From Octopus bimaculoides (lineage: Eukaryota): DNA of 63,368 nucleotides. Below are positions 3,261-43,853 of this stretch, piece after piece. Position 1 is the stretch's first letter. Every line of letters begins with the position of its first letter. Below the pieces are notes generated by a model. It made no database searches, was not told the origin of the DNA, and saw only the letters and a program-made list of their open reading frames with translations. The position numbers and the translations under genes are program-made. Location of the stretch: positions 120,189,460-120,252,827 of the forward strand of contig NC_068983.1 of assembly GCF_001194135.2 (NCBI RefSeq), written 5' to 3'.

Positions 3261-4360
3261 GTTTAGATCACCAGTGAACAAAACACATCATNNNNNNNNN
3301 NNNNNNNNNNNNNNNNNNNNNNNNNNNNNNNNNNNNNNNNNNNNNNNNNNNNNNNNNNNNNNNNNNNNNNNNNNNNNNNNNNNNNNNNNNNNNNNNNNNN
3401 NNNNNNNNNNNNNNNNNNNNNNNNNNNNNNNNNNNNNNNNNNNNNNNNNNNNNNNNNNNNNNNNNNNNNNNNNNNNNNTATATATATATATATATATCAG
3501 GGGTGTATATTCCAGGTGTGCTAGGTGTGTGCTGCACATCTATCGAAAATGGCAAATTCATTATAAATATTAACTTTATTCATTAATTTAATAATAGATC
3601 TTAAAGGAAAACTTTTGTTATACGTCTGCTTGAAATTTAGTGGTATTGAGTGTGGCAGCACACCCAGTACCACAAAATACAACAACCATATGCCACTGAC
3701 CGACCTTCCTTCCTTCTTTAAGGAGCATGCACTGCCTAGACTTAACTGTTATTGCTGATGATATCTTCCATTTCCTTTAATAACAATTTGGTTTCTGTCG
3801 TTGTCATAACTAATCCATGGGGAATAACTCTTCCTTTCTTTTATATATATATATATTTTTTTATATTAGATTTTCACCTCCAATTTTTTTCCCCCAAAAT
3901 ATCGTTCCAGCCTTTTACTACCACTAAGCAAATCAGAAGTGTGTGTATTTCTAGCGCTAAAAAGATTTGCTACTACCAGCAGATCTGAAAAGTCATCAAT
4001 ACCATAAAGTGATAATATTTGATGGTAGGTAAAATCTCAACCTGTTATATGCCAAATGAATTGACCCTGGTACTTTTTCCTCTTCTTGTTAAGACTGGTA
4101 CTTATTCTATCGGTCTCTTTTGCTAACCCGCGTAGTTACACACCAACACGAGTTATCAAGTGGTAGTGAAGGAAAACAGAGGCAAACATACACACACAGA
4201 CACAGGAGTGGCTGTGTCGTAAGTAGCTTGCTTACCAACCACATGGTTCCGGGTTCAGTCCCACTGCGTGGCACCTTGGGCAAGTGTCTTCAACTATAGC
4301 CTCGGGCCGACCAAAGCCTTGTGAGTGGATTTGGTAGACGGAAACTGAAAGAAGACCGTC

Positions 4361-4495
4361 GTGTGAAAAAGTGCCACTCCCTAACAGTTGAGGGAACCCG
4401 TGGAAGAGGTAGGCCCAGGAAGACCTGGGCTGAGGTGGTGAGGCAAGACCTTTGAACGTTGGGCCTCACCGAGGCGATGACTACTGACCGAGACC
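4361..4495 (+). mobile_element. RTE LINE 3' coding fragment joined to a SINE 5' half
   Basis: Encodes RGRGRPRKTWAEVVRQDL..LGLTEAMTTDRD, nearly identical to 33182-33280. Directly follows the SINE head at 4205-4360 and ends at a gap. Confidence 0.85.
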
Positions 4496-9327: not shown

Positions 9328-9663
9328 ATGTATCTCTGGAGTCCGTTCACCTTCTATACATTTTGGATTGGGCTCTTTTTCTGTGTGGCTTTTGCAGGCG
9401 TTTATGTATTCGTGTTGCTGTTGACAGTGGGATGGGCCATTCTCTGGTGGTACCATATTCCCCAACTGCCCGAAGAACGGGTGACATGTGTCCTCGGTTC
9501 ACTTAATTCTACCAGCGGTTCAGTAGAACAATGCAGTCCACAAAACATCAACTGCAATTCAGACGAACACGGCGACAGACGTAGCATCGCAGCACCGTTT
9601 CTAGTCGCACATCGTGGTGGTGCTATTGATGCGCCTGAGAACACCATCGAAGCTTTCAAAATA
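9328..9663 (+). CDS. GDE1: GDE1-like glycerophosphodiester phosphodiesterase, coding exon 1 (N-terminal hydrophobic segment and catalytic HRG motif)
   Basis: First in-frame ATG after an in-frame TGA at 9247. Reads MYLWSPFTFYTFWIGLFF...FLVAHRGGAIDAPENTIEAFKI, matching the GDPD motif AHRG..xxPENT. Donor GTAAGT at 9664, phase 0. Confidence 0.93.
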
Positions 9664-9815
9664 GTAAGTTTTTTTAATTTTTTTTACCGCATATACATAT
9701 ACACTTATATGAAAACTGGAAAATTCATGCATACACACTTAAATACAAATATAAACAAGTAAACGGCCTGCCGGGCGATCACGCTATTTATTATACCAAA
9801 TAGGTTCTACTTCTA

Positions 9816-10106
9816 GGTACTACTAAAGCAGCACGGACCCGAACGCGCAGTCGCGCGTCCGCGCTAGCTAGTCTTGAGTGGTCGATCCTAACCCTAACCC
9901 TATCCCTAACCCTAACCCTAACCCTGTCCCTAACCCTAACCCTAACCCTAACCCTATCCCTAACCCTAACCCTATCCCTAACCCGCGTGTGCAAATGAAT
10001 ACATGTTTAGGGTTAGGAATAGGGTTAGGGTTAGGATCGACCACTCACGACTAGCTAGCGCGGACGCGCGACTGCGCGTTCGGGACCGTGCTGCTTTAGT
10101 AGTACC
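9816..10106. mobile_element. Foldback/Mutator-like non-autonomous element containing telomeric repeats
   Basis: About 100-bp TIRs with 3 mismatches, starting GGTACTACTAAAGC. Perfect 9-bp TSD CTACTTCTA (9807-15, 10107-15). About 16 CCCTAA-type units at 9887-9984 and TTAGGG units at 10007-10035. Confidence 0.9.
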
Positions 10107-11209
10107 CTACTTCTATAGATCAGAGATTCTTTCCATACAGAATATAGCAGGAAGCTGACAGCACAAATGATGTTGCATTTGCCAAGTTTCATCAACCAAA
10201 TGACTTTCTCTTTTAATTACGCAATCGTCTTTAGTGATCTCTTAAATCATTTACAACGACATTAGTTTGTCGTCTTTTGCGAAACATAATGTTCTGTGTA
10301 GCATAACCTCATCTGGTCCGTATTAAAATAACTTACTACTTCGAAAACTCTTCATTCCCTGTGTCCATGCGAGTTCACGTGTGTATGTGTAAGTGAATTT
10401 GTGCGCGCGCGCGTGTATGTATGTATGTATGTATGTAAGTATTAGTGCGTCTATAGAATGTTGTATGCTTTCTGTGTTTATATATATANNNNNNNNNNNN
10501 NNNNNNNNNNNNNNNNNNNNNNNNNNNNNNNNNNNNNNNNNNNNNNNNNNNNNNNNNNNNNNNNNNNNNNNNNNNNNNNNNNNNNNNNNNNNNNNNNNNN
10601 NNNNNNNNNNNNNNNNNNNNNNNNNNNNNNNNNNNNNNNNNNNNNNNNNNNNNNNNNNNNNNNNNNNNNNNNNNNNNNNNNNNNNNNNNNNNNNNNNNNN
10701 NNNNNNNNNNNNNNNNNNNNNNNNNNNNNNNNNNNNNNNNNNNNNNNNNNNNNNNNNNNNNNNNNNNNNNNNNNNNNNNNNNNNNNNNNNNNNNNNNNNN
10801 NNNNNNNNNNNNNNNNNNNNNNNNNNNNNNNNNNNNNNNNNNNNNNNNNNNNNNNNNNNNNNNNNNNNNNNNNNNNNNNNNNNNNNNNNNNNNNNNNNNN
10901 NNNNNNNNNNNNNNNNNNNNNNNNNNNNNNNNNNNNNNNNNNNNNNNNNNNNNNNNNNNNNNNNNNNNNNNNNNNNNNNNNNNNNNNNNNNNNNNNNNNN
11001 NNNNNNNNNNNNNNNNNNNNNNNNNNNNNNNNNNNNNNNNNNNNNNNNNNNNNNNNNNNNNNNNNNNNNNNNNNNNNNNNNNNNNNNNNNNNNNNNNNNN
11101 NNNNNNNNNNNNNNNNNNNNNNNNNNNNNNNNNNNNNNNNNNNNNNNNNNNNNNNNNNNNNNNNNNNNNNNNNNNNNNNNNNNNNNNNNNNNNNNNNNNN
11201 NNNNNNNNN

Positions 11210-11213
11210 ATAT

Positions 11214-11256
<43 letters not shown>
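11210..11256. repeat. (GATA)n microsatellite
   Basis: Direct reading; adjoins a gap. Confidence 0.95.
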
Positions 11257-11592
11257 TGCGTGCGTGCGCATTTATATATCTATACGTGTGTCCCCGACAA
11301 AGTCCTAGTTTCGAAGATCAAATTTTATCCCTTGTGATGATTGTTCTCATTGTCGATATTTTTCGATTAAGTCTAGCAAATCAATCAAGTAAACATGAGG
11401 ATTACAGTTGTTAGCAGTAATCACTTCGAGTTAGCTTGGATAGATTGTGTTGAGCTGTTATTATATCCTCTTGCGATCCGGTTGCCAAGTTGGAATAGCA
11501 GCACATCTTAGATCTGATTACACTCCAGACACGATAGATTGTCGGAGTTAAGTGTTCATATTACTCAAACACATGACTGATAAATAAATGAC

Positions 11593-11700
11593 ACGTAGAT
11601 GCATCGGGACCTCTGTACTTAAATACAGAGGTCCCGATGCATCTACGTAACCCTAAAACCAACCCTGATACTAACCCTAACCCTAGCACTAACGCTAACG
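11593..11700. repeat. 56-bp near-perfect palindrome followed by degenerate CCCTAA-like repeats
   Basis: ACGTAGATGCATCGGGACCTCTGTA-CTTAAA-TACAGAGGTCCCGATGCATCTACGT (11593-11648), then aaccctaaaaccaaccctgatactaaccctaaccctag. Confidence 0.85.
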
Positions 11701-11941
11701 AATTTGCACTGCAAAACCGTATCGTTACGTATTAGTATCGGGAGCTTTGTATTTGTTTCCTACACATTTTTTTACACCCGTTGCACTATTTTTTTTTCTG
11801 ATTTTCGTTTCCGAGTAAAGTTGTAAACATTAACCTTGACTTTTTTTGATCGGGGCAGAAAGTCCAAAATATCTGGTTGGAACACGTGGAAAATGGAACT
11901 TTGGAAATTGTGAAGAAATATTTGAAAATGAAGAGGCAGAG

Positions 11942-12024
11942 GTAAAGAATACGTACACCACCCATTTTCGGCGTAACAAAAACCCTAACCCTAACCCTAA
12001 ACACCGGGTGTACGTATTCTTTAC
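11942..12024. repeat. 18-bp inverted repeat enclosing (CCCTAA)3
   Basis: GTAAAGAATACGTACACC (11942-59) / GGTGTACGTATTCTTTAC (12007-24). Internal aaccctaaccctaaccctaa. Confidence 0.8.
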
Positions 12025-12993
12025 TTTCGCCAACTGAAGAAAGGGACATAATGCTTCCATTATTTCAATACTTACATCCAATACTTTCCTTAACATTCAG
12101 GAATTTTTCGATGGAGTTTTGGAATAGCTGTCCCACGAAGTCCCATACATCGTAGGGAAGGGAAAGAATATAGAAATGGGGCAAAACTGTAAAAAAAAGG
12201 AACTTTGATGAGCAAATTTTTTTCAGAATATTATTTTGTTATATAAAACNNNNNNNNNNNNNNNNNNNNNNNNNNNNNNNNNNNNNNNNNNNNNNNNNNN
12301 NNNNNNNNNNNNNNNNNNNNNNNNNNNNNNNNNNNNNNNNNNNNNNNNNNNNNNNNNNNNNNNNNNNNNNNNNNNNNNNNNNNNNNNNNNNNNNNNNNNN
12401 NNNNNNNNNNNNNNNNNNNNNNNNNNNNNNNNNNNNNNNNNNNNNNNNNNNNNNNNNNNNNNNNNNNNNNNNNNNNNNNNNNNNNNNNNNNNNNNNNNNN
12501 NNNNNNNNNNNNNNNNNNNNNNNNNNNNNNNNNNNNNNNNNNNNNNNNNNNNNNNNNNNNNNNNNNNNNNNNNNNNNNNNNNNNNNNNNNNNNNNNNNNN
12601 NNNNNNNNNNNNNNNNNNNNNNNNNNNNNNNNNNNNNNNNNNNNNNNNNNNNNNNNNNNNNNNNNNNNNNNNNNNNNNNNNNNNNNNNNNNNNNNNNNNN
12701 NNNNNNNNNNNNNNNNNNNNNNNNNNNNNNNNNNNNNNNNNNNNNNNNNNNNNNNNNNNNNNNNNNNNNNNNNNNNNNNNNNNNNNNNNNNNNNNNNNNN
12801 NNNNNNNNNNNNNNNNNNNNNNNNNNNNNNNNNNNNNNNNNNNNNNNNNNNNNNNNNNNNNNNNNNNNNNNNNNNNNNNNNNNNNNNNNNNNNNNNNNNN
12901 NNNNNNNNNNNNNNNNNNNNNNNNNNNNNNNNNNNNNNNNNNNNNNNNNNNNNNNNNNNNNNNNNNNNNNNNNNNNNNNNNNNNNNNNNNNNN

Positions 12994-13298
12994 GTTTATT
13001 GAGCAAAAACACCTAAAGCTCCACGTGGCTCCTGCAGGGGATGGTGGCGAACCCTGCTGTACTCTTTCACCACAACTTTCTCTCACTCTTACTTCCTGTT
13101 TCTGTTGTGCCTGTAATTCAAAGGGTCAGCCTTGTCACACTGTCATGCTGAATCTCCCCGAGAACTACGTTAAGGGTACACGTGTCTGTGGAGTGCTCAG
13201 CCACTTGCAGGTTAATTTCACGAGCAGGCTGTTCCGTTGATCGGATCAACTGGAACCCTTGACGTTGTAAGCGACAGAGTGCCAACAACAACAACAAC
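12994..13298 (+). mobile_element. Same SINE family, 5' end in gap
   Basis: Body nearly identical to 48001-48295, with an (AAC)n tail. Confidence 0.9.
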
Positions 13299-14662
13299 TG
13301 ATACCTCCACTACATTAACAAAACACTGTTCGGGAACTGACATTCTGTTCTTGCAGGAAAGTCTAGGCATAGTGACTTGAGTGTTGAAGCCATCCCCTGA
13401 CTTTGTTTCTCCTTGACTATCTTAAAAATGCATATTTTTCAGTGAAATTTTCCACAGATATTTTTTATATGGTATTGATTACAGTTGCATGCAAGGGTTG
13501 GGGGAAAGGAAAAAGGTATTCTCCTCACTACAGCCTTTGTTAGTGATGCATATATTTTCAATGAAGTTTTTCAGAGATAACGTTTCCAATGGTGAAAATT
13601 ACGATTTGTTTTCTTCAAATTCTATCAAGATAATGGTAGCCTGCATTTTTGAAAATGGATAATGTATCTCAGGGACATTTCATCTAAAAATCATCATCAT
13701 CGTTTAACGTCCGCTTTCCATGCTAGCATGGGTTGGACGATGGCTACACAAGGCTCCAATCTGATTTGGCAGAGTTTCTACAGCTGGATGCCCTTCCTCA
13801 CACCAACCACTCCGAGAGTGTATTTTAAACAAAATTATGAAGAAACAGAGTTGAGAAGACTCACTTCTGTACAGGAGCGTGCCTCACCTGCTGTGCACTA
13901 GGGGTAGGAGCGGAGTGGTCCTCTTCGGGCTTTTGGGTCTAGTGCCACTGTGGTTACCAAGAAAATATTTTTTCAAATTTTGTCAAGGTACATGCATGGC
14001 TGAGTGGTTAAGAAGTTTGCTGCTTGACCATGTGGTCTTGGGTTCAGTCCTACTGTGTGACATTTTGGGCAAGTATCTTCTACTATAGCACCGAGATGAC
14101 CAAAGTCTGGTAAATGGATTTTATAGACTGAAATTGAACGAAGCCCGTCGAATATACATGTGTACGTGTGTTCGTACATACGTATGTACACTCATAAATA
14201 CATAGGTATGTCTTTGTGTTGTGTTCATTTCCTACCATTGTTGGTTTGTTTACGTCCCCATTACTTATCAGTTTGGCAAAAAAGTTTGATAAAATAAGTA
14301 CTGGGGTCAGTTTGTTTGACCGAACACTTCAAGTTGGTGCTCCAGTATGGCCGTAATCCATCTAAAATAAAATATAAGAATTNNNNNNNNNNCCCCCAAA
14401 TAAAACTCTCTTTTTAGGACCGTCTTAATAAAATTAGACTCCCCTTACATAGATTGACATTGGCCAAGAATCCATGGAGCTACTGGCCAACTGCTCAGTA
14501 TGGCCATATCTTAAGACAGCACAGCCATCCCCCCACCGTAGCAAGCAAGAAAAAAGTAAGTTTGAAGTATCTTACTTTCATACTAACTGAAGAAAATGGC
14601 ACAAAAAGGAGTGTAAAAAAGAAAAATAAACAGGAAAAGAAATCAGTCTATAAACAAATAGG

Positions 14663-15117
14663 CATAGGAGTGGCTGTGTGGTAAGTAGCTTGCTTACCAA
14701 CCACATAGTTCAGGGTTCAGTCCCACTGCGTGACACCTTGGGCAAGTGTCTTCTACTATAGCCTCGGGCCGACCAAAGCNNNNNNNNNNCCCACTGCGTG
14801 ACACCTTGGGCAAGTGTCTTCTACTATAGCCTCGGGCCGACCAAAGCCTTGTGAGTGGATTTGATAGACGGAAACTGAAAGAAGCCTATCGTATATATAT
14901 GTATATATATATATATATGTATGGGTGTGTGTTTATGTTTGTGTTTCTGTGTTTGTCCCCCCAACGTCGCTTGACAACCGATGCTGGTGTGTTTATGTCC
15001 CCGTGACTTAGCGGTTCGGCTTAAGAGACTGATAGAATAAGTCCTGGGCTCGACTAAAGGTGGTGCTCCAGCATGGCCACAGTCAAATGACTGAAACAGG
15101 TAAAAGAGAGTAAAAGA
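14663..15117 (+). mobile_element. Second SINE family copy spanning a 10-N gap
   Basis: Same head and tail as the 39939 copy. 58 bp are duplicated on either side of the gap. Confidence 0.85.
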
Positions 15118-15239
15118 AATAAGTAGGCATGCGCCACTCACTGTATTATATATGTTTGATAATGTGCTAGTGTATATAAGGCAACATGGTTATAGTATAA
15201 TATATTAAGACAGCAGGCTAACAACATCAGTGGAAGAGG

Positions 15240-15490
15240 AAGACGGTGAGCTGGCAGAAACATGAGCTGGCAGAAACATGAGCTGGCAGAAACATGAGCA
15301 TGCTGGGTGAAATGCTTAGCAGTATTTCATGTGTCTTTTAAATTCTGTCTTTCAAATTCTGCCGAGGTCAGCTTTACCTTTCATTCTTTCGGGGTCGATA
15401 AATTAAGTACCAGTTGCGTGCTGGCATCGATCTAATTGACTGGCCCCCTCCCCCAAAATTTCAGGCCTTGTGCCTAGAGTAGGAAAGAAC
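15240..15490 (+). mobile_element. Third SINE family (GGTGAGCTGGCAGAA head), head 16-mer triplicated
   Basis: GAGCTGGCAGAAACAT x3, then TTCAAATTCTGCCGAGG...GGGGTCGATAAATTAAGTACCAG...GGCCTTGTGCC. Other copies at about 19826-20065(-), 21535-21720, 29745-29950(-), 31040-31245, 44690-44870(-), 55660-55865(-) and 61820-61915. Confidence 0.8.
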
Positions 15491-18400
15491 ACGAGTGGGA
15501 GAGGTTAGGGAGATAAAGGAGGGGGGGGGGTGGACCTTTTCTTATCTTCATTGAACTTCTCTTAATTTATTCAGTTACAGTATTTCACCCTCCTACTTTA
15601 CCTTCATAACCTCTCCTACTAAAGGTGTTACCCTGTTGTTCTACTATACTATACATATTTTTAAGTTGTACCTTTTTGACATGTGACTTCTTAGTCTTTG
15701 TTTCTTTGTAGCTTTATTCAACAAGGAACAACTTTGTAACTAGACACTAACTGAAGGCAGCATTTCACAATAAATAATATAATCCAAGTAAGACAAAGAA
15801 ATACTTTAACACATCTTTAAATAATTAGTTACAATTGTTTCTGTACCAACTCTGCTTACAATGACAGTTTATGCAAAAATTCTAAGCATCTAGGAACTTA
15901 AGCCAAGAAGTGTAGAGCAGGTGTGCCCTTTAAGACAAGCCTATGCAAATGAAATTATGATAGATCTGAGATGGTGTGTTGGAACTGAAATAATTATGCT
16001 TTGATAGAAGTATGATAGTAATTCAAAGCAACAAATATATTATTATATTCCCTTTTGTTTAATTGTAATTGTATTGTTTATTTATAATTGTAACTGTTTC
16101 ATTGCTCTCTGCTAGTCCCAAACCTGTGTGTTCCACCCACATGTCCTGTTTCACTGTATTATTGCTATCTGCTAGCCCCTAACCCATGTATTCTACCCAC
16201 ATGTAACAAGAAAACGTTTTACTCACCCTATCCCAACAAACCAATCTACATCTCCACATCTCTTCTCTTCCTCACATTTCCTCCTTCATACACTATGCCT
16301 TGCTCTCACTCCCCCATCCTGTCCTCATGGCTCTGTTCCTCTTAATTATGTTTATCCGGTAGCCCTCTGACTATATATACCAAGGTTTTTGCCACTCACT
16401 TCTCTCTCTGCACCCTTTAATCACACTTCCTTTGCAATATTCTGCCATTTATATTATGGTGTTTGAACCTCAAGGGTATGCCCTGGCACTTGCCACCATC
16501 TACACCATCTACATCTCTCTCTTCCTTTACTCAACCATCCCATTTATATTCTGATCCCCACCCTTGTGAGTATGCCTGGCATTTTGCCACCATCTCTATC
16601 CTACTGTCTCCCACTTTGTCTCTTCTCTTGGGTAACCATGTATTTCCTTTGCAGTAGCGTACCTGTTTCTGTTTCCATTCCTGATCTCTCTCTCTCTCTG
16701 GCTGGGTATCCTTGTACTTCCTCTACAGTAAGATACCTGTTTCTGTCTCTCTGTCTCACTATAAACTTTCATCATCTGACACAAGATCACCTCCTCCAAT
16801 GCCTCCTCTTCTCTTGAAAGCTTTTTTTTTGCCTTGTAAGTACTTGGTTACCCTGTCAGTGGAGGTGCCACTTAAAAGTGCCCAGTCTTCACTGTAAAGT
16901 GGTTGGTATTTGGAAGGGCATCTAAATGTAAAAACCTTTCCAAAACTGACCTTGCCTGTGCTTGTGCCATGTAAAAAGCACTGAGTCCACTCTGCTGAGT
17001 GGTTGGTGTTAGGAAGGGCATCCAGCTGTAAAAATCCTGCCAAAACAGTCACAGAAGCCTGGTGCAGGCATGTTGACCTTTGTGGGTTTGCGCTTGGAAC
17101 TAAATATTACAAGGTGTTTTCATCTGATGCTCTAACAAACCTATAAATCATTGAATATCAACATATTTCATCATACATTTTATGACACAATCCCTGAGAA
17201 AAGCATGTAAGGGAGAACAACTTAGTGGAAATTTTATATCTCAGTCCACTTTTTTAAAGCATATATTGTTGATCGTAAAACAATGACCTTTTATTTAATT
17301 ATTTGATTAATTTTATCTTAATGATATAAACAATGAATATTATTAGTAAACAAAACTATTTGCATTTTGTCCATATGTATGCTCCCAAATAGCAATGAAA
17401 TAATACAAAGTGTCCATCCACATTTTTTATATTTTTGACTTATTTATGTTTGCATAGCTCACAAAACTAAGTTGACAATTGACAGTTCTATGTATAAAGC
17501 TATTGACTTGTAAATTCTACATTTCATGACAATAGACACCAAATGAAAATATTCTCCAATTATTACTATGCAAAATCCCACTGTCCCCTGACTATTCATC
17601 CAATATGATGTTTGCACTTTGCAAATAGAGATTCATCAGTCTTAGCATGTTCACTGCCTAATTTAATTTGATTGACAAATAAATATAGCCATTCAATCTC
17701 AATCTACTTTGATGACCAATCCACTTTTGCTCATTAATTTCCTTTAACCTTTATGTGTGTGTGTCAATGGTGGTGGGAGATAAGAGCCTTTGTTTCTAAG
17801 TAACCTTTTGTTATTTAAGTAACCTTGGATCAGACCTGACTAAAGGTGTGCTAATGAAGTATCTTACTCATTTATTCAGACATAGCATATTTATGACTCC
17901 ATTGACTAATGTATCCTCCCCTTTTTAAGATTTGAGGGAGCTTTGGCTTTATTTTTTAACAAGACAATTGACTGTGTAGAAGCTCCTCATGTCAGCTTAT
18001 GTATGTAATTGTTCAATTATATAATTAGTAAAGATGTCAGTCCATATGGGGAAAACATAACTAACACAATATTCTGTCTTTCTTCATGTATATCCATCCA
18101 GATCAGGTGACTTTCCTGGACCAGTGTAACTGCTCCATGCCAAATGTCCTGATCGAGTGATGAGGCATGCATGTCTGGTCTGGGTTTTAGTTACATTGGT
18201 CTTTCACCAGCTGAAATATCTCATCTGGGCATAACACAAATATATGATAGCAGTAGGTCGCTAGCTGAACTGGCTGATACTGGCTGTTGTCATTTTGTTG
18301 TCCATTTGTTTGCTCAGCATCTAGTGATATTTGCCATTGACTCAATAAGTCCATCTTCTGAAATACTTTACATCTACCATGCTGCATCCCATGATTTCAA

Positions 18401-21400
18401 CATTACCTGGCTCAAGTGGTTACATGCTATTTAATCCATAGATGGGACCCTGACTAGTGATTCTACTCATGGTCAGTGTAAACCTGGGAACAATAGTGGC
18501 TAAGATGTGGTTCCACACCCTTCAAATCCCTGGAACGCCCAAACCAGAGCCCCACTACTGGATGCTGTTTTAAGTCATGTATGAGTAAGAACTAATTATT
18601 GCTTTCTTAATATTGGTAAGAGGCCAAATAGTTTCTATTTCTAGTCCTATATCAGTAATATTCGATTGTCAGATCAATTGACAGATTCTATCTCTTCAAG
18701 AAAATCTCTTAAGATATTGTATTTAACTTAACCTTTTGTCTCATTTGTATAAGTCAAACTTATGTTACTACAAATTTAAAATAGTCATATGATCTTTAAT
18801 CAGCATTAAAAAAATAAATAAATCATTATATCTCCCATTCATCAACCTTGATGTAATAAACGAAATGATGATTATTATTAGCAGAGGTCGACATTTACCT
18901 CTTTAACTGAGTCCTCATCAACTTGAGTATTGGGGATCAATCAACTATCCCCCCCCCAAAAAAAAATTGCTGGCCTTGTTCCAAAATTTATTATAAAATT
19001 ATAAAATTATCACCTTGATAAATAAAGAAAAGGTTTTTTTTTTTTTTTACTTCTGATAAGCTCATTTCATCTGTTCAATATCTACCTTCCTTTCCGTAAC
19101 AAATTCTGTTTTATCTGTTTAATTTGAGGAACATTAACACCTAATCATTTAATCTGCTTTTTGACTTTAATACATATCAAATAAAAAACAAAAAAACAAA
19201 AGACCTTCCATTACACATATATTATTCTTTTAGTTGAATAGACCTTATTGCTCACTATCTCTTCCTTCTCTCTCTCTCTCTCTCTCACCTAGCAACAGTC
19301 TCCTACCTTTAAAACTAAAAGTCCACTAATATATCCTTTTTTTTTGTATATATAATTAGGCTTCTGTCTTTTGATTTCATAACTGATTAGAATTTAATAC
19401 TAACATTCACCCACCACCAAGTAATAAATCAAGGGTTGATAACTGGAGGAAACAATTTTAGATAGAAGCCTCTGAAAAGAACCATTTGAAAAGGTACATC
19501 AATTTATGTAAAAATCTTCCAAAATAGCATCAGTATGCCATTAACTTAGCATGAATACATTATCAATACTATATGAACACACAGTTAATATTACCATCAA
19601 CTCACCATCAACATATCATAAACATACCACTGAGCTGGTCATGAATAGAGGAACAAAGGCTATTATAACATGTTATAAGAGAGAAACATAAAATAGCTAT
19701 ACAGTGGTACAGTAGTTGTTGGCTCTTTGCTGGGGCCAGTTGTTTGCTTGTTTGTATGGTTATATTTTCAAGCAATGAATCCGATGTTAGTGTTACAGCA
19801 CCAGATTGATTTCTTGCTTCACAGAGGTATATTTATTTCTTTATTGCCCACAGGGGGCTAAACATAGAGGGGACAAACAAGGACAGACAAAGGGTTTAAG
19901 TCGATTACATCGACCCCAGCAAGTAACTGGTACTCATTTAATCGACCCTGAAAGGATGAAAGGCAAAGTCAACCTCGGCGGAGTTTGAACTCAGAATGTA
20001 ACACTAGACGAAATATCGCTAAGCATTTCACCCAGCATTCTAACGATTCTGCCAGCTCACCGCTTCCTATTTATATTATAAATGTAAAGAGACAATGTGA
20101 ACCAGCTGAATATTTCATCTGGTTAATTAATTTTTTTATATTTATGGTTGGAAGTTGTCATAAATTTAAGTAGCCTGGATTTCATATTTACTCTTTTGCT
20201 GTGGAAATTAGATATATCCACTCAAAATTTCATTATCCTAACTATGAAAAGCAGTTAAGAGTTATGAAATTTTAAGTGGATATATCTGATTTCCACAGTA
20301 AGTCAGATACATCCAGTCTATTTTTTGAGGAATGTCATGTTCAAAACTACTTTTGTTCAGATATGTCAAGTTTATTGAAGTAATGTGACTTGCAGAAGAT
20401 ACTAGTTCCATTTTTTTGGTTGATACTTGACATCATTACTGGAATAAGCACAAAATTTAATTTCTCATTTACAGGGTGAAACTCTTTAAAAAACTGTTAT
20501 TGTTGTGTAGTTTGCACTTTGCCATTCTTTTGATTTATCTTCTTAAATATTATCTAAATCAGTCTCATTGAGTATAATAATTTCCTGGCTTTATTATTTG
20601 ACATCTTGGGACCTTGAAAGTTCAGTTAACTTCTTCATGTACTTTATGAAACATTCAGTTTTGCTGCTGCAACTCAAGTTACTGTTTAGCCCTTTAGCAT
20701 TCAGTTTTCTCTGTCAAATTTAATGCTTATTTATTCATAATGTTTTGAATTAGTCAAATATCTTGTAGCTTTGAAATTTCAATGATGTGATTGATTATTT
20801 TTAGAATGACATTGTAGGGTAGGCGTGAGGAGCCTGATCTGGTCAGTTCAAACACATATCTTGCTCTTTTCATCCCATTTAACACTGAAAACATGAGCAA
20901 TTTTCACCGCGTAGCAGTGATGGGCCTTAGCATATGCAATTAGCTAATTTCAATTCTCTGAAGACATAAAATATAAGGAACACAGTTTTTCACGAAATAT
21001 TTGAAATGTTTCAAACCTGCAGTCTCTTTTACAGCATCACCTAGACTTATGTTCAAACCTGTCCCTGACACAGTGCCAGTTTTGTAATGTTTGAATTCTT
21101 TTCTAGTATTACCAATGCTCCAACAATTACAAGTGATATCACATTTTCTTTTGGGTTCTTCACTGAACAATCACCACTTCCTATTTATAGATTTTGAATT
21201 TACACCAAGTTCTAAATGTTCTAAGTCAAAGTAGAATGATATAGAGTGGGAAGACTCACTAACTGTTGTTCACAAGTAGACCATTGGAGAATTTTGCCTT
21301 TAAATAATAGTGGTTTCATCAGTCATAATAGACATTTTATATTGTTTGGTAATTATATCTTTCACTAGTGTTTTCACATTTGATTCCCTCTGTCATGTGC

Positions 21401-24077
21401 AATATATGCATATCTCTTACAAGGGTGTGCAACATATCCTAAATTATGACCATCCTTGTCTTTCATTTCAATATCATAAGACATATCTGTATATGGCCTA
21501 TCTTTCTGTACAATATTATATTCAGTTCTAAAGGCAGTGAGCTGGTAGACTTGTTAACACATTGAATAAAATACTTAATGGCGTTTCTTCTTCTTCTTTA
21601 TGTTCTAAGTTCAAATCCTGAAGTCATCTTTGCCTTTCATAAAATAAAGGATTAGTCAATAAAGTGTTGGAGTCGATATCATTGACTTGCTCACTCTGCT
21701 AAAATTGTTGGCATTTTGCCAATACAATTCCCAAAACTTGACCTGATTTTGCTTTGTCATTTATCAATGACACACTGTTTTTCAAAGCAGCATTAGAAAA
21801 AAAGAATCCATAAAAACGAACAGTGCAAAATCACGATGTCTAGAAAAAATATTCTTTGGTAACCTCCTAGTAAAATAATACTAGCTGCATTTTGACGTGC
21901 TGAAAAGTTTTTGTTATATTGAAGGAGTGTCAAACAATTAAAAGAATATTGTTCACAGTTTTAGCAGTAAGAATGTTTGTCAAGTACTCACATGTGCCAT
22001 TGAAAGATTTTCTCTCAAATTCTTTCAAGGCCATATTAGATAACTCTTCTGGTGTATGCATGTGTCTTTTATCTTTTACTTGTTTCAGTCATTAGACTGC
22101 AGCCATGCTGGGGCACTGCCTTGAAGAATTTTTAGCTAAATGAATCAACCTCAGTACTTCTTTTTCTTTTTCTTTTTAAACCTGGTACTTAATCTATCAG
22201 TCATTTTTGCTGAACTGCTAAGTTATGGGGATACAGATATACCAACACTAGGTGTCAAGCAGTGGTGGGGGACAAATACAGACACAAACACATGATGGGC
22301 TTCTTTCAGTTTCTGCCTACTAAATCCACTCACAAGGCTTTGGTTGGCCCAAGGCTACAGTAGAAGACACTTGCTCAAGGTGTCACACAATGGGACTTAA
22401 CCCTAGGACCACATGGTTAGGAATTAAGCTTCTTACCACACAGCCACACCTATGCATATGTGTCTTTGTGTTTGTCCCTCCTTCTACAGCTTGACAACCA
22501 GTGTTGGTTTGTTTATGTTGCTGTAATCCAGCAATTTCACTAAAAGTGACTGATTGAATAAGACTTAAAAATATAAGTACTGGAGTCAATTTGTTTGACT
22601 TAATCCTTCAAAGCAGTGCTCCAGCATGGCCTCAATCCAATGATTGAAACAAGTAAAAGAAAAAAAACCATTCATCTAATTCACTTGTTTATTGGCATGG
22701 AAGAAAATGAGCAACAAGAGAATCAAGGAGGAAGAGTGAGAGAGAGGGACTCTCCCCTTCACCGTTCCCTCCCTCCCTCTCTCTCTCTCACTTTTCCTCC
22801 TTGACTCTCTTGTTGCTCACATGTGACCAACAGCCATCCATCTTTCTTTCTTCTACTTCCTTCCTAAAGACAAGATGTGCTTTTACCTGTCTCTTCTCAA
22901 AGCTTATTTTTCTAGCACTCACCACTTCACATTGTCTTGGCTTAATGGCCCTCACTGTTCGTTTTTACTATTTTGTTCTCACTGTCTTGTTTTGTCTACG
23001 TTTTTTTTGATGTCCTGTACCCATGTATGCATGTATATGTACATATATATGTAGGTATGTACATATATGTATGTATATATGCATATATTTATATGTTATA
23101 TATATATATAATGTATGTAAGCAAACACACGATTACACAACATATACATGCAACTGTGTGCATATATGTATATGAATATAAAGAGTTGCATATAAATACT
23201 CATGCATGTTTCAAAACACTTCTGCTTCAAATCCAATCAGAATGCTGAAGCCATGCTTACTGTTAAACTATAAATGAAGATCTGTTATGTTTTATTATCA
23301 TAATAAAATAAAAATAAAATAAGCATACATTATTATTATAGTTAAACAAATATATTTTTATTGATAGAAACTTGACAAAGGATATCTTGTAACATATATC
23401 TCTATCAGTAGATACTGAACTTAAAAAATATACCCTAGAAATTGAGAAGTAGTTATATGTTATACTCTGCTTGCCCCTTTGTTTCTATCATTGTGTATAC
23501 AACCAGGTGTAAGACACCTGATGATGATCAGAGATTAAAATAGAGTGAAGTGTATAGATGTAAATATTCAGTAATGTTTCATTTCTGCAGATTTAGACAT
23601 TTTCAGCCTAAACTTTTTTGTGTTTCTATGGCAAGATAAATATGGTTTATAATCATCATTGTTCTCAATCTACAACAACTCCAGTGTCTATTATGTGTCT
23701 GTTCTTTGGTTACACTTCACTTGTGCAGCTGTGAAAGGCAGTGAAACTTGTTACAGCCTATAAACAGACAGGATGTAACAGCTTAATCAGAAATCTGCAT
23801 AGACAAACATGGGCAAAAGCTACAACTGTTACTTATCAGAATCCTTAATTTAAACTAGACACTTAGGAAATCTACATTTCCATCTCAAACATCATTACAG
23901 GTATTTATAAGTATTTAAGTTTATTTCAAAGTTCATGGTTATTTACTTTATAGAAGATGAAGTAGTTTAATTCAGTCTTTGTTGTATATTTCCAAGTCAG
24001 TTTTAATTAAGCAGATTTATGATTAATGGTGTTCCAGTCACAGTCATCCTGTCCTTATCTGGGACTGTTATCTAATG

Positions 24078-24327
24078 CAGGGGTTTTCAAACTGTGGTCC
24101 GCGGACCACAGGGGTTCACAAGGACAAGACAGGGGGTCCGTGGACAGCAAATACTTTTTATGGGCAATTTGATTTTGGATATGTTTTTTAATCAAAATCT
24201 TTTAATTGACAATAAACCTATTTGTTAAATACTGTTAAATAAATAAATGTAAAAATATATGTTATTTTAAGCAAATATTTATGTATAAATAAAGGGGTCC
24301 GCAAGTCAAAAAGTTTGAAAACCCCTG
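24078..24327. mobile_element. hAT MITE, same family as 2982-3260, in GDE1 intron 1
   Basis: Same 16-bp TIR. Perfect 8-bp TSD ATCTAATG (24070-77, 24328-35). Internal sequence nearly identical apart from indels. Confidence 0.95.
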
Positions 24328-25173
24328 ATCTAATGTATCCTTCCTTTCTGAAATACGTAAATCTCAAACTAACCTGATTATATATTTCAGAGTTGTACCT
24401 TCATGTCATGTAACTTGGTTGTTATTTGGAGTGAGGCAAATGACCTGTTATTGTTAACACAATGATAAGCACTATTGAATACAGTTAATTAGTAAAAACT
24501 GACAAGATTAGTGTTGGGTTTTGCCAGCAAAAATCCAGTCAATGATATTAATCAAATAAGTCAAATTTGCAAACAGTCAACTGGAGAGGTTTAATAACTA
24601 AAATTTGTGTATTATTTCAACTATCAGTAATAAAGGCAATGAGCCAGTTAAGAAAGCTTCATGTGGTTCCTTAATCTGCTAGAATAAGCAACTAAATCAC
24701 TCTCAAATCACACCTAACCATTTTAAGAATGACACATTGAACTCTCCCCTCATTTTCAATGTATGAGTATCCAATTGTTTGATTTACTACACAACCTGTT
24801 GATTGAACAAAGGTGTAATGTTGTAACGTATTCCACAGACATGTGTATACCTTAGTATGATTCTCAGGTAGAAAACAGTTTAATATGTTGGTCTCAAAAT
24901 GTTTCTACTGTAGTAAATGTGTTTTGGGTCCTAAACAACCATACAATTTTTGTTGTATGATTGAAACTTGTATGGTTATACTGTATGTGTTTGTGTGTGG
25001 GGGGGTGTTTGGGTAGGTTGTATCTAACAAGTAGCCATAAAGAGTATCAGAGTGTAAAATTTTTGATAATATGGGCAGTCTGAGATTTGATATTAAAATA
25101 TCCAGTAGAGTACGATAAAAGAATTATGTTTGTACCAAAATATTTAGTCTCTAAATTAAATTTTCTTTTCTAG

Positions 25174-25349
25174 GCTAAGAAAAATGGTGCAGTTGCTGTA
25201 GAATTTGACCTTGAATTTACTGGAGACTGTTATCCTATTGTTATGCATGATGATACCCTTGATCGCACCACAAATGGAACAGGTTTTGTACGTGACCACA
25301 CCCTCGAAGAAATTCTTGACTTGAATGCTGCAGCTAAACATGAACACAG
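25174..25349 (+). CDS. GDE1: GDE1-like exon 2 (176 nt)
   Basis: Acceptor ttttcttttctag. Reads AKKNGAVAVEFDLEFTGDCYPIVMHDDTLDRTTNGTG...AAAKHEH(R), with the E-x-D and HD catalytic motifs. Donor GT at 25350, phase 2. Confidence 0.95.
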
Positions 25350-27897
25350 GTATATTTGCTGATAGTTTTCTTTGTGCTAATAAATATGTTTGGAGATTTT
25401 CTAACTTGATGTTCACCATAAACCTAGTTTAACATTTGTCCATCCATCTTAACATAGTCTAAGTGTCTACATGAAGTCAGTTTAATTATCTTTTGTTTGT
25501 TTCTTTCATTTTATCTAATTTTTTTGCCATATGAAGAGGATTGGCCTGCAACAGTCCTGTGCTGGTGCCACATAAAAAGCACTCGTGCTGGTGCCATACA
25601 GAAGTGCTTGTGCTGGTGCTACGTTAAAAGCACCCAGCACACACACTGTAAAGTGGTTGGCATTAGGAAGGGCATCCAGCTGTAGAAACCAAGCCAAATC
25701 AGACTGGAGCCTGGTGCAACTCCTCCAGTTTGTCAGTTCTGGTCAAACCGTCCAATCCATGCCAGTATGGAAAATGGACATTAAAGAATGATAATAATGA
25801 TGATGATGTTCATTTTTAAGTCATTCTAATTTGTTAATATGGATAGTTGCCAGGGTTGGTAGGCTAATGAGGGTCTGATTTGCTATAAAATTGAATGGCT
25901 CCACTCAGAATACTGATCTCTCTTTTGTTCCATGGCACACCAGTACACATATCTTCTGTTTAAAAGAATCAATTATATCCTAAGCTGAGATGAACTGATA
26001 ATAAGTCTGTAAATATAGAAATTGCTATCAGCATGAAGAAACCTATGTCCAAAGTCTATCCACTGTTATAAAAGTTCAGTAGAACTGGCAGATAAGTTCT
26101 GGTGTGTCTGTGTTGTAATCAGTGCTTGAGATAGAGGAGCTGCTATAGAGTCTTTTCTGATAACAAGATTGACTGTATAATGTGTATCTCAGGTGTCTCA
26201 GGGCATATGTCGGTGAGCCCAGGTGGAGCAAGCATAGAGTTGTGACTGTACAATCTATTGTGGCTCTCTGACTACTTTGTTGATTTTAATTAGAAATATT
26301 TTGTTTACAGATACATACTGTACATAGTCTGAAGTTCAACATATTTGCTAGTGTCATTGTCATCAACTAATGACAGCCATTATAAAACATACAACTCATC
26401 ATTGACAAGCTTCCATTCATTGTACTTATTGGCAAACATAAAACACAGATGAGTTTGATACAGTATTCTGGCTTGTAAATAAAACTAGTGTGTGTATTGA
26501 GTGCTTTGTATCTCTGAAATTTCTTCCTTAAAGTATTATGCAGTAATCTAATGGATGCACTACTTGGGTCCATTATATAACTCCAAATATATAACTGGAA
26601 TCCTTTGATGTTCATTTTCCTAAATGTCTTATGGTGTAACACCACCACTTGGTCCTTGGGTACTTTTAATGGCATTTATTCTGTTGAAAACGTTTAGGCT
26701 AGGTTTTCAGTTTGGGGATGCATTTCCCCTTCCTCCCATCAGTTTTTGCTGCCTTGTAAAAGGTCAGAAGCACTGCCCTTCCCTCCTACTAAACAATAAA
26801 AAACAAAACAAAACAAAGGTTGAAGACACTTCACTATAGAGTCTGTTCAAACATGTTTCTTACATTGAAGACATTTTTTCTCAAGAATAGGATGTTACAC
26901 ATTATAGAGCAACAGTGAGATTAAAAATAATCCCCATTAGCATGAATATTAGTTAATGATGTTTCATGGCCACTGGCATATATGTCATGAAAGTTTACAT
27001 TATCATCAACAGAGAAGGTTATCTGTTGATCATTTCCTTGTAACGTTGCTTCTAATGACCAAGTTGACATCCTTGCTCAAAATAACTAGCATTCTTTTCC
27101 ACGTTTTATCTGGGAAAAGGCTTTCCAAATCAATGAGCTGTATCAACAAAGAAGTAACAAGAGAGACATACAAATATTCTATTTTATGTTTAAATTCGAT
27201 TGGTTACACAGTCTAATCATTATATAATATTTCACTCAGTTTTCATCTGTTATATTCTTCCTGATATTTCAAATGTGTGTGTGGGGAGTGTCTATGAACA
27301 ATCTGTTATCTATCATCAGTCAGCAACAAGCATGTGACGTTTGGAGGTTGTTTTCCTTTTACTTTGCACAACTGAATAGAGACGACAATAATATCCTAAA
27401 GTGGATGTTTTCTTGGTACAAGAAGGAAGCAGGATTGACACAAGAATTGCATGCTGTCACTAACAATGTAGATTCCTAAATGTCTATTTTAAACTAAGGT
27501 TCTGAGAAGCAACAGCTATAGTTTTTGCCTATGTTTATCTATGTAGATTTCACCTGGAGTTATAAAGAATTATTGTCTGTTCACAAGATGTAATAAGTGT
27601 TTCTGCCTTTCACAAGCTGTACAGGTGAAGTGTTGCCACAGAACAGACACATAATGGACACTGTTGTTGTGGATTGTGGACAGTGATGTCTGCAAACCAT
27701 TTTCTGTCACTAGAAACAAAAAAAGTTTTGGGTTGTTTTACTTGCTCAAAACTAACCTACCACACTAGGAAAACGAACCTCATACCTTACTTCTCCTTCC
27801 CAGTTTGCCTCTGCATGTATGCATATATGTATTTGTGTATGTGTGTGTGTGTTTGTGTGTATTTTCATGTTCTCTATTGTTCTGTTTTCTATTCTAG

Positions 27898-28003
27898 AGC
27901 CAGTTATGGAAAAGTGAGGGTCCCACAACTGGAGGAAGCTGTTATGGTTTGCTTACAATTGAAACTAAAAATGTTTATTGACTGCAAGAGGAGTGCAGCT
28001 GAG
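27898..28003 (+). CDS. GDE1: GDE1-like exon 3 (106 nt)
   Basis: Acceptor ttttctattctag. Reads (R)ASYGKVRVPQLEEAVMVCLQLKLKMFIDCKRSAAE, the IPTL.E / F.D.K region. Donor GTAATT. Phase matches exons 2 and 4. Confidence 0.9.
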
Positions 28004-28343
28004 GTAATTCTATTGCTTTCTTATTGTGTGGTGTGTATGTGTGTGTGTGCGTGTGCATGTGTATGTGTGTTAGAGTTTGTATGTATATGTGTTTCTGGTG
28101 TCCAGGGTGTCCCTAAAGTCTAGACACAGGCAAAATGTATATTTTCTAGAAATACACATAAAATTTTCAACAACAATTTATTCAATTGGAATATTAACAA
28201 ATAACATCTTCAATATGATTTCCACCATTTGTGATGCAAAAGTTGATGTGCTTTGCAAGATTTATATGAGTCCAATGCAATAACTCCACATAGGGCCAGC
28301 TCAAAGTACCAGCAATGTAACACCCACGGCAGTTGAAGGATAA

Positions 28344-33847: not shown

Positions 33848-34062
33848 GTGAGAAAAGCAGATCCAAATATTTTGACTGCTTTAACTCATAGACACCAAAT
33901 TTATTCTAAATGTTTCATTGATGGTGAGGAGCGACAGAAAACATTCTGGCGGCAGATAATAGCACGACCCATAGACATTATTTTAGAAGTTGGTCAGTAT
34001 ACATTTCTGTGGTATCTCTGCGGTAACTCAGCATTTCTCATGAATAGGGACACATATTCTGG
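33848..34062 (+). CDS. GDE1: GDE1-like exon 5 (215 nt)
   Basis: Acceptor ttccttttag. Reads VRKADPNILTALTHR...LWYLCGNSAFLMNRDTYS(G), matching the TALTHR and LWYLCG.SAFL motifs of GDE1. Donor GTAAGT at 34063, phase 2. Confidence 0.93.
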
Positions 34063-36346: not shown

Positions 36347-37590
36347 GCCTTCGTTTGTTCATTCGTACGCCTGTCAGTTTATCTATTAATAAACTTGCTC
36401 ACTCACCCTTTGTCATCTTCTCTCTTTAAGACAAGGAAATATTGCTGTACTGCATTCAAAAGTAAAATAATGCATGTTCTAGATGGTCAAGCAATGTCCT
36501 AGAAAGATCTGTACTGGAAATTTTTGACCACACTAAAATATCCTTGCTTTATTTAGAAATATAAGTTTCCTAATAAATTCTTGCCAACATGGAGCAGTGA
36601 TTAACTTAACTTACTCTGCTAATGTGGGAATCTCTCTGCAATCACCCAACCAGCTAAAATTGCAATGAAATTCCTCTGATTCAAACCATACCATCTTAAA
36701 TAGGATGGACACGTATATACATAAAGACAAGATATTCATATGAGACTATCTTTGAGCATTGGTTTATTGGTCTTCTTTTTTGAGTGCACTATACTGAATG
36801 TCTCCTTGCAGTGAAAATGATTGACTAACATATTTGGGCATTTTTTGAGGACTTCCTAAATCCACCACCATTTACACCAATGGGCTCCAAATGGCTTTCT
36901 TTTTTGTAGATTAGAGGAGCCAGTATTTGAACTCAGGATACACTGAGCTGAAACAAACACAGTTTCTTGGCAAGCAGTTTTTAACATTCTGCCAATCTAC
37001 CATTCCAGGCTGATACTTTTTTCTATTGACTCTGAAAAGATAAAAGGCAAAGTTGACTGGAGCAGGATTTGAACTTGCAACATTGAGAGTTGGAACAAAT
37101 ACTGCAAAGCATTCAATCTGATGACTATCAATTCGACATTGTATATACTAGATATACAAACAATCAAAGAAGCTTCTACATAGCCATGCAACCTGCCAGA
37201 AATACCAACCAAAACTCCCTCAAGTTGCACACTATTATCTTAAAAATGGAAGTACATATGGGATAATATAGTTCTAGAAAGAATGATTAAATGGAGGAAA
37301 GCACTTTGTTTCACATCTGCTGGTCATATGCAGTACAACTGTTATTCAGTGGCAGGTATAGGTTTTAAAGACAAAGTTAGAGTATATTTTGAATGTTTAT
37401 AGTTGTTGTCAATTCTTGATGGTAGAAAAGTGATGGCATTTAATCTGTTAATTATTCATCATCGTTATTGTTGTCATTATCATCATTACCATCTTCATCA
37501 TTATCACTGTTGTCATTGTTGTCCTTCCCATGCTTAAATAACATGCTAAGCAGCAAAATAATTCTAATCTATATTGTTCTTATATTCCAG

Positions 37591-37717
37591 GTTATACCAT
37601 AATTTTTGGAAGAAGCGTGGTGTACGTGTGTTTGTCTGGACAGTTAACGACCCTAATGAAAAGCAATATTTTCTGAAAACAAGACAGTGTAGTGTCATTA
37701 CTGATAGTCTGCTATAA
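37591..37717 (+). CDS. GDE1: GDE1-like exon 6 (terminal, stop TAA 37715-37717)
   Basis: Acceptor tatattccag. Reads (G)LYHNFWKKRGVRVFVWTVNDPNEKQYFLKTRQCSVITDSLL*, with WTVN and ITD motifs. Spliced CDS is 1053 nt = 350 aa plus stop. Confidence 0.93.
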
Positions 37718-39599: not shown

Positions 39600-40490
39600 A
39601 GTTCTTTGCAAACAAACTTCTATATTGGTAAAACAACTGAATGTGAAATGAATATTGAGAAAGTGTACAAGTAATAAGTGAATGCAGTAAATTAATTCAG
39701 AAGGGATATATAAGACATGATAACGTGGCCTGGACTACCTATAAAAAATTATATGCAAAGTATAAGTTATAAAGAACAGAGAAATAGCATAAACACCAAC
39801 TCCCAGTATATTCAAGACTCAGGACATCAAAATCCTTTGGGAATTTCATCAGTTAATGTGGTCATAGGATAAGAAGAGCAGAAGACCTGATATGGTTGCA
39901 GTGAATAAAAATGCTAACAAGATATAAATTAATTATCCAGGCGCAAGAGTGGCTGTGTGGTAAGTAGCTTGCTTACCAACCACATGGTTCTGGGTTCATT
40001 CCCACTGCGTGGCACCTTGGGCAAGTGTCTTCTACTATAGCCTCGGGCTGACCAAAGCCTTGTGAGTGGATTTGGTAGATGGAAACTGAAAGAAGCCTGT
40101 CGTATATGTGTATATATATATATATGTATGTAGTATATGTTTGTCCTCCCAACATCGCTTGACAACTGATGCTGATGTGTTTATGTCCCCCGTAACTTAG
40201 CGGTTCGGCAAAAGAGACCGATAGACTAAGTACTAGGCTTACAAAGAATAAGTCCTGGGGTTGATTTGCTTGACTAAAAGCGGTGCTCCAGCATGGCCGC
40301 AGTCAAATGACTGAAACAAGTAAAAGAGTAAAAGAGAGAGGGTATACAAGAATTGAGATCAAGGAACAAGAATCAGGAGAGAAGTACAAGAAACTCAAGT
40401 GAAAGATTACAAATATATAGTTACAAAGGAAGATACATGTAGTAACAATAGTGATAGGGTCTTGAGATATGGTATCTAATATACTAGATA
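39600..40490 (+). mobile_element. R4/Dong-like (restriction-like endonuclease) non-LTR remnant split by a SINE
   Basis: ECSKLIQKGYIRHDNVAW (39680), IKILWEF (39826), RRPDMVAVNK (about 39880). After the SINE: TRIEIKEQESGEKYKKLK...VVTIVIGS. This is the CCHC/RHD + PD..D + K..KY architecture. Confidence 0.7.
39939..40338 (+). mobile_element. Second tRNA-headed SINE family (internal microsatellite, AGTAAAAG tail), best copy
   Basis: GAGTGGCTGTGTGGTAAGTAGCTTGC...GGGTTCATTCCC head, central (TA/TG)n, tail GAAACAAGTAAAAGAGTAAAAGAG. Other copies at about 296-470, 1198-1515, 4205-4360, 5329-5550(-), 13990-14360, 14663-15117, 22070-22450(-), 31350-31990, 41180-41540 and 46445-46590. Confidence 0.9.
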
Positions 40491-42700: not shown

Positions 42701-43139
42701 TATCTTTCTTAATGCCTGACCCTAACCCTAACCCCTCTACTTGCATGGGTTAGACAGGTCTGAAGTGCAGTATATTGTAATTCTGAAACTCCTGTATAGG
42801 GCCTTCTTCTCACTGCAGGTATCTGGAATACCGTCAAAGTCTACATTTACCTCACAGAAATCAACCCACAAACTAGTAGGTGAACATCAACTTCAATCTG
42901 CAAGGACTTCCAAATGTCTTGGATACATCTCCCTTCACTCCAATTTCATGGTTCTTGATAGCACCTCTGAATGAAAACAGGGTGTAACAATTCGTTCACA
43001 CCAACTTGGGAAATTTCACTTTTGTGAAATTTGGCATAACATATTTTTATATATTTGATTTGCAAGATTCTTGATGTGAAATCGTGTGTTGAAACAGTTA
43101 TTGTTATACTTGGGGATGGTCATATTTTGCCAATTAAAC

Positions 43140-43363
43140 ACTATATGTTTGATCTTTACTTTAACTTTATTATTATTATTTTTGTTCCTTTGTCAAAGCT
43201 CTTTTGTCACACATCATGTGACCTCTTCAGTGACTGTTTATTGTACGTGTCCACATTGACTAAGCAAAACAAGAGGAGACACGTGGGAAAAAGAGTCACT
43301 GAAGAGCTTTGACAAAGAAACTAAAATGATAATAATAAAGCTGAAGTAAAGACCAAACATAGT
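43140..43363. repeat. Inverted repeat (~65-bp arms) carrying a degenerate hammerhead motif
   Basis: Arms 43140-43203 and about 43302-43363. Minus strand 43234-43192 reads GTCA-CTGAAGA-GGTCAC..GTGAC-AAAA-GAGCTT-TGAC. Confidence 0.7.
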
Positions 43364-43853
43364 GGGTATGTTTAACTGGCAAAATATGACCACCCCCGAG
43401 TATAACAATTTTTGCATATACTTACATGAGAAGCAAGGATCTTTCAGGTTGATCTGCTGTGCCATCTACTTTACCTTAGTCATCCATCAGAGAAAACCTC
43501 TTTGACTTTAACTACTAGATGAAGACATAAAATGCATTTCTGTCTTTTCTACAGTCAGTTATTTACCTACCCAGAACTTCAACTATCTAGAATTCCTTCT
43601 TGGTTTATTCTTCTAATAAATATATTTTAACATCCAGTTTAATGTTCAACTTATTGAAATATTACTTCATAAAAACTGCATAAAAAACATAATTGAAAAA
43701 CAACAAAACATGATTATTATTTCCATATATTTATTATGTAAGTAAATAATGTTTGTAATAACAGAAAGCAAATCAATGAAAACTACAAAACAGATAATTT
43801 AATGTAATGTTCAGTAAAAAAAACATGAAAATCTGGTAACTCTATTATTAAGT

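Follow-up and report, generated by a model that had tools for sequence, protein, structure and literature searches.

The GDE1-like gene and the element in its first intron

The window, by which we mean the whole stretch of 63,368 nucleotides that was analysed, carries on its plus strand a GDE1-like gene (9328–37714) whose introns are crowded with repeats. Exons 1 and 2 match the Pfam GDPD family at 5e-23, and the best named homologues are vertebrate GDE1 proteins, with a nematode GDE1 also among the named ones. The gene is laid out as follows.

9328–9663, plus strand: exon 1 of the GDE1-like gene, with the ATG at 9328; it encodes a transmembrane segment and the beginning of the GDPD domain (HRGG...APENT)
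9664–25173, plus strand: intron 1, about 15.5 kb, with the donor GTAAGT at 9664; it holds the element
25174–25350, plus strand: exon 2 of the GDE1-like gene (AKKNGAVAVEFDLEFTGDCYPIVMHDDTLDRTTNGTG...), with the acceptor tttctag and a match to Pfam GDPD
~27896–28006, ~33848–34060 and ~37586–37714, plus strand: further exon blocks of the GDE1-like gene, colinear with vertebrate GDE1

A previous reading, made from the sequence only, had described a 291-bp element with a perfect 9-bp target-site duplication about 150 bp downstream of the GDE1 exon 1 donor. The distance, measured from the GTAAGT at 9664, is 152 bp, the gene is GDE1-like, and every boundary of the element was borne out. Its parts are listed below.

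9807–9815: left copy of the 9-bp target-site duplication CTACTTCTA, which is present as a single copy at the empty site in the related contig L001
9816–9886, plus strand: left outer domain, 71 nt, 61% GC with 10 CpG, 5′ start GGTACTACT
9887–9984, plus strand: left inner domain, 16.3 CCTAAC (CCCTAA-type) units
9985–10006: unique 22-bp core GCGTGTGCAAATGAATACATGT, without coding capacity
10007–10035, plus strand: right inner domain, 4.8 TTAGGG units
10036–10106, minus strand: right outer domain, 71 nt, with 2 mismatches against the left outer domain
10107–10115: right copy of the 9-bp target-site duplication CTACTTCTA

The element proper (9816–10106, 291 bp) has CTACTTCTA on both sides, identical at 9 of 9 bases, and because the bases on either side mismatch the duplication is exactly 9 bp long. 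Its arms (9816–9915 and 10007–10106) form an inverted repeat of 100 nt that is 97% complementary, with three of the 100 positions differing; between the outer domains (9816–9886 and 10036–10106) the mismatches lie at position 22 (A/T) and position 59 (T/G). Both termini begin with GG (GGTACT). The outer domain is 61% GC against 36% for the whole window, and a 35-nt piece of it matches only the two arms within the window and matched in 0 of 100 shuffles. The chance that a perfect 9-bp repeat would exactly abut a 100-nt inverted repeat is about 4^-9. The modular organisation of the ends that had been claimed, in which a GC-rich outer domain of 71 nt is followed by hexamer arrays of unequal length (16.3 units on the left, 4.8 on the right) around a 22-bp core, was likewise recovered. 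The open reading frames across the element are repeat-derived only and gave no homologues in protein searches; the element lacks coding capacity and is essentially one 100-bp hairpin with a loop.

The sense RNA of 9807–10115 is predicted to fold into a 100-bp stem (−206 kcal/mol, z = −24), as anticipated by the claim of a long hairpin in the pre-mRNA, and the same interval as single-stranded DNA has a predicted fold of −127 kcal/mol. In an Rfam scan no match reaches the gathering score, and the sub-threshold 'miRNA' matches were set aside as generic hairpin matches. The main local consequences of the element would be structural, namely a long intronic RNA/DNA hairpin, a C-rich/G-rich tract and a CpG-rich island. 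Lying 152 bp into intron 1, a hairpin and a CpG-rich island would plausibly be acted on by double-stranded-RNA editing or give rise to small RNAs.

The empty site and the age of the insertion

A search with the open reading frame covering the upstream exon found L001, a Logan contig of run SRR11869390 from a related genome. Its gene shows 71–74% protein identity to that of the window, and the exon, the donor site and the intron are all present. The insertion point in L001 reads GGGTTCTACTTCTA|TAGATCAGA, with the 9-mer present once and the element absent. When the window flanks were joined with one copy of the 9-mer and then aligned to L001, the two were colinear through the junction, with 22 of 22 bases identical there and 438 of 518 aligned bases (~85%) identical overall. 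The single 9-mer and the absence of the element in L001 therefore show a real insertion with the 9-bp repeat as its target-site duplication, and a duplication of this length in turn implies a 9-bp staggered cut at integration. In the same intron, ~50 bp upstream of the empty site, L001 has at 601–650 an extra ~33 bp (GGGTTTCAAAAACCCATTTTTCG...) relative to the window; this stretch holds a short palindrome (GGGTTT...AAACCC), and the indel is unrelated to the element.

Judged from this alignment, the insertion is younger than the divergence of the two genomes, or, should L001 be a paralogue, younger than that gene duplication. Precise excision in the L001 lineage is a possible but unusual alternative to insertion, precise excision being unusual for cut-and-paste elements. 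The ratio of observed to expected CpG is 1.5 in the outer domain, where 10 CpG have been kept, against 0.29 in the window. The description of the element as a young transposon stands up well on these data: its arms differ at 3 of 100 positions, its duplication is perfect, its outer domain is CpG-rich, and it is absent from a relative whose flanks are ~85% identical. Its apparent age could be too low if the arms have exchanged sequence. Between close relatives it is a plausible presence/absence marker.

Taken together, a length of 291 bp without coding sequence, 100-nt ends at 97%, a perfect 9-bp duplication and the empty site in L001 give the element the structure of a MITE, and its composite ends, each a 71-nt unique domain plus 16.3 or 4.8 hexamer units around the 22-bp core, give it the structure of a Foldback-like element. 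In our judgement the element in intron 1 of the GDE1-like gene is very probably a MITE built as a foldback, hence a DNA transposon of the cut-and-paste type that is non-autonomous. It would have been mobilised in trans by a transposase encoded elsewhere that recognises and binds the unique 71-nt outer domain. Such a transposase would be of the type that leaves 9-bp duplications, from the Mutator/Phantom lineage, as for some Foldback-like elements such as Tm1, or from Merlin.

Order and orientation of the telomere-type arrays

Read inward from the outer domain, with each unit given as the three letters that follow CCT, the left arm runs AAC, AAC, ATC, AAC, AAC, AAC, GTC, AAC×4, ATC, AAC, AAC, ATC, AAC. 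Its variants are CCTATC at units 3, 12 and 15 and CCTGTC at unit 7, and the order of units 1–4 recurs at units 13–16. The right arm, read in the same way, runs AAC, AAC, ATT, AAC and a partial unit; its third unit from the outer domain is AATAGG (reverse complement CCTATT), and the left arm has a variant at the same position. Since this variant third unit is common to both arms, the arrays are best regarded as homologous parts of the inverted end that were not independently added, and separate telomerase addition to each arm is ruled out by the same observation.

The hexamers would have been inherited with the inverted end and not added later by telomerase, because both arms start with the same unit order (AAC, AAC, variant, AAC). 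The simplest reading of the unit order is that an ancestral arm of about five units may have expanded by about 12 units on the left, with contraction of the right arm as the alternative. The array could then be a passenger microsatellite module in which a gain on the left or a loss on the right of ~12 units occurred by slippage or unequal exchange. A change in copy number is usual for tandem repeats inside Foldback-type ends.

The arrays are oriented (CCCTAA)16...(TTAGGG)5, so that from either terminus the C-rich strand runs inward in the 5′ to 3′ direction. An interstitial telomeric sequence (ITS) left by telomere fusion needs the head-to-head order (TTAGGG)n(CCCTAA)n, to which the orientation in the element is opposite, and this origin was rejected. 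The orientation is likewise opposite to what would result if telomerase had healed two internal breaks that were afterwards rejoined, and this origin is ruled out too. Ordinary ITSs, be they fusion relics or products of telomerase break repair, resemble the element in having a short internal TTAGGG-type tract with variant units. They differ in lacking inverted ends and a duplication as boundaries, and fusion relics read (TTAGGG)n(CCCTAA)n whereas the element reads (CCCTAA)n...(TTAGGG)m.

These features also bear on two explanations that dispense with a transposon. One is that a staggered double-strand break took up, as a single event, a DNA fragment that was palindromic or came from a telomere; the element would then be single-copy and belong to no family. 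One copy was indeed observed, and four other telomere-like tracts in the 63 kb would fit insertion related to telomerase or repair, but an exact 9-bp duplication that abuts exact inverted-repeat termini is the signature of integration by a transposase, the repeats run opposite to those in telomere–telomere fusion products, and outside the repeats lies a unique 71-nt outer domain of a kind that telomerase addition cannot make. We regard capture as very unlikely on these grounds. The other is that a chimeric palindrome arose as an artefact of the library or of the assembly, and to this we attach next to no weight. Artefactual palindromes do occur, and the draft assembly has gaps, with ten runs of N in the window; against this, the arms are unequal (16 versus 5 units) and differ at 3 positions, and they are bounded by a perfect duplication of a 9-mer that is single in the relative, which artefacts do not produce.

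Placement of the element and other repeats of the window

Transposon superfamilies differ in the size of the duplication they leave, which is 8 bp for hAT, 7–8 bp for P (Galileo-type foldbacks), 2–3 bp for Tc1-mariner and 3 bp for PIF-Harbinger. With a duplication of exactly 9 bp, the element is excluded from hAT, P/Galileo, Tc1-mariner including TBE, and PIF-Harbinger. MULE duplications are 8–11 bp and typically 9 (PMC6446971), a range into which the element falls. Merlin elements have inverted ends of 24–462 bp, a conserved terminal 5′-GG and 8- or 9-bp duplications (PMC8101967), and the element, with its 9-bp duplication and 100-nt ends that start with GG, agrees with these as well.

Among Foldback-like elements, Tm1 of Meloidogyne (root-knot nematodes) has composite ends, a variable number of tandem repeats and 9-bp duplications; its autonomous member encodes a Phantom/MULE transposase, and MITE-like members exist (PMC3169594). 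The element shares with Tm1 (PMC3169594), Drosophila FB and Tetris (PMC4079207) composite ends that make up most of its length and 9-bp duplications, and in all of them tandem repeats, unequal in number between the arms, come after a terminal part that is unique. In these systems the repeat number also differs between copies, and short non-coding, MITE-like members exist. They differ from the element in their repeat, a family-specific unit of 10–31 bp in place of a telomere-type hexamer of 6 bp, and of the element one copy was seen. Rehavkus, which is related to MULEs, combines a 9-bp duplication with a minisatellite (PMC6446971), and the 100-nt ends of the element lie within its range of 26–400 bp; however, Rehavkus has a PHD-finger transposase and its minisatellite lies only before the 3′ end, whereas the element has no open reading frame of that kind and carries its repeat in both arms. 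Merlin resembles the element in its 8–9-bp duplication, the length of its ends (24–462 bp) and the terminal 5′-GG, and differs in that a tandem-repeat inner domain, present in the element, is not reported as one of its traits (PMC8101967).

Of the sequence-only reading's assignment to a Foldback/Mutator-like element, the architecture and the 9-bp duplication hold, both fitting the Tm1 type; the lineage does not follow from them, as Merlin, with its terminal GG and 8–9-bp duplication, fits equally. The more specific proposal, that the element belongs to Foldback/Mutator (MULE/Phantom), is moved by a MULE-type DDE transposase and is one of a young multi-copy family that disperses telomere-repeat arrays, seems to us a serious possibility, though one that falls somewhat short of even odds. 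It draws on a duplication inside the 8–11-bp range of MULEs (PMC6446971), on a long modular end with unequal numbers of tandem units that matches Tm1 (PMC3169594), and on Rehavkus, which likewise joins a 9-bp duplication to a minisatellite (PMC6446971). Because the array belongs to the inverted end itself, sister copies would be expected to carry it. Set against the proposal are the lack of a MULE transposase in the window, where the long open reading frames, scanned against Pfam, yielded a mariner fragment only, and of any other copy there, the fact that Foldback-like architecture is not monophyletic and gives no evidence of common descent (PMC3169594), and the agreement of Merlin with the two measurable features as well. 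A place in the Merlin superfamily instead, as a MITE moved by a DDE transposase of the IS1595 kind, is rather unlikely: 100-nt ends beginning with GG and a 9-bp duplication are Merlin traits (PMC8101967), but the GG at the termini carries little weight as evidence, Merlin is not described as typically having modules of tandem repeats within its ends (PMC8101967), and no Merlin transposase was seen in the window. We thus describe the element as a foldback-type MITE and leave its superfamily between MULE/Phantom and Merlin, with the repeat module tipping the balance somewhat towards the former.

Tandem repeats of variable number are a familiar feature of the ends of Foldback elements, and ciliates are known to have transposons with telomere-repeat ends. 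Tetrahymena Tel-1 is one such telomere-bearing element. Among transposons whose ends contain telomere repeats, the TBE family of ciliates comes closest as a precedent: the TBE of Oxytricha (PMC4724952), like the element, has inverted ends that bear telomere repeats with the C-rich strand running 5′ to 3′ inward. In TBE, a Tc1/mariner element of a ciliate with a 3-bp duplication (ANT), the repeat forms the outermost tip (PMC4724952), whereas the element, found in an animal, has a 9-bp duplication and carries its repeats behind 71 nt of outer domain at either end. A telomere-bearing element of the TBE kind was rejected accordingly, the repeats lying 71 nt inside each terminus and not at the outermost tip. 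In keyword searches of a literature library, no paper came up that describes a MITE or foldback element of an animal whose inverted ends contain telomere repeats.

No second copy of the element occurs in the 63-kb window, and a sensitive blastn search of the window and the loci L001–L007, with the outer domain and the core as queries, matched only the two arms. An exact scan for three pieces of the inverted end (the terminal 21-mer, an internal 27-mer and the junction of the outer domain with the telomere units) gave 0 matches in metagenome, prokaryotic-genome and viral contigs, collections that are unsuited to animal repeats. Both stop-free frames of the inverted end (outward 'RV', inward 'LT') had no homologues in protein collections, and an exact-sequence look-up of four open reading frames across the element returned nothing, short-read contigs breaking at multi-copy palindromes. 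Since these collections could hardly show an animal repeat, their negatives count neither for nor against a family.

Three earlier suggestions concern the telomere-type sequence itself. That the element spreads interstitial telomeric sequence is not established, one copy having been seen in the window, and that it recruits telomere proteins is speculation. That TTAGGG is the telomere repeat of the source organism is also not established, with four other short CCCTAA-type tracts in the window giving only indirect support.

Several plant transposons have short subterminal repeats as transposase-binding sites, and telomere-type tracts are prone to breakage, able to fold into G-quadruplexes and able to bind telomere proteins. 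Subterminal transposase binding, as in those plant elements, and telomere-protein binding are alternative putative roles for the hexamers. We consider it improbable that the element is a copy of an active multi-copy foldback MITE family with the host telomere repeat as its inner module and with functional hexamers. Were there a foldback family with a telomere-repeat module, transposition, and not telomerase repair or chromosome fusion, would be a source of ITSs in animals; were the hexamers functional, they would be subterminal sites for a Myb-type partner of the transposase or recruiters of telomere-binding proteins. If a whole family resembles the element, it would be a transposon route that scatters telomere-type repeats, an animal counterpart of the telomere-bearing elements of ciliates; as a single copy, the element is an anatomical curiosity of a well-known class.

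The four further CCCTAA-type tracts have the C-rich strand on the plus strand in 4 of 4 cases, and with the element they make five telomere-like sites in ~58 kb of resolved sequence, a high density. At 11593–11648 a near-perfect palindrome of 56 nt (96%) is followed by a degenerate CCCTAA-like tract (~11649–11700) and then, at 11724–11754, by a third, diverged copy of the palindrome arm that is 81% complementary to 11621–11651. Across 11593–11754 a telomere-like tract is thus again found between inverted repeats, although no clean target-site duplication was apparent. At 11935–12031 an inverted repeat of 25 nt (88%) encloses a 47-nt loop with a perfect (CCCTAA)3 at 11983–12000; this second small hairpin with telomere-type units shares with 11593–11754 a sequence island of 1 kb that has an assembly gap on either side. 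That two other tracts of the window lie between short inverted repeats hints that the association of telomere tract and inverted repeat could recur. The two remaining tracts, short and interstitial, are at 42714–42735 and 57729–57793, the latter with two perfect (CCCTAA)3 blocks and degenerate units, ending ~70 bp before a gap of N.

The source genome seems rich in hairpin elements. AT-rich foldback or palindromic MITE-like elements, self-complementary over nearly their whole length (74–90%), lie at 46922–47209, 58586–59032 and 43100–43409, and also at 20196–20301, 22708–22819, 61412–61496 and 63080–63221; their sequence is unrelated to that of the 291-bp element, and two of them directly adjoin assembly gaps. 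The window as a whole, a draft scaffold, has many TA, CA and TGTA microsatellites and short dispersed repeat families whose copies are 75–94% identical (for example 4188–4365, 14650–14892 and 39938–40111). An open reading frame at 51612–51962 on the plus strand matches the mariner transposase domain (Pfam PF01359, 6e-19) and represents a Tc1/mariner fragment, near which two ~300-bp repeats (47918–48297 and 50895–51274) are 93% identical and mutually inverted.
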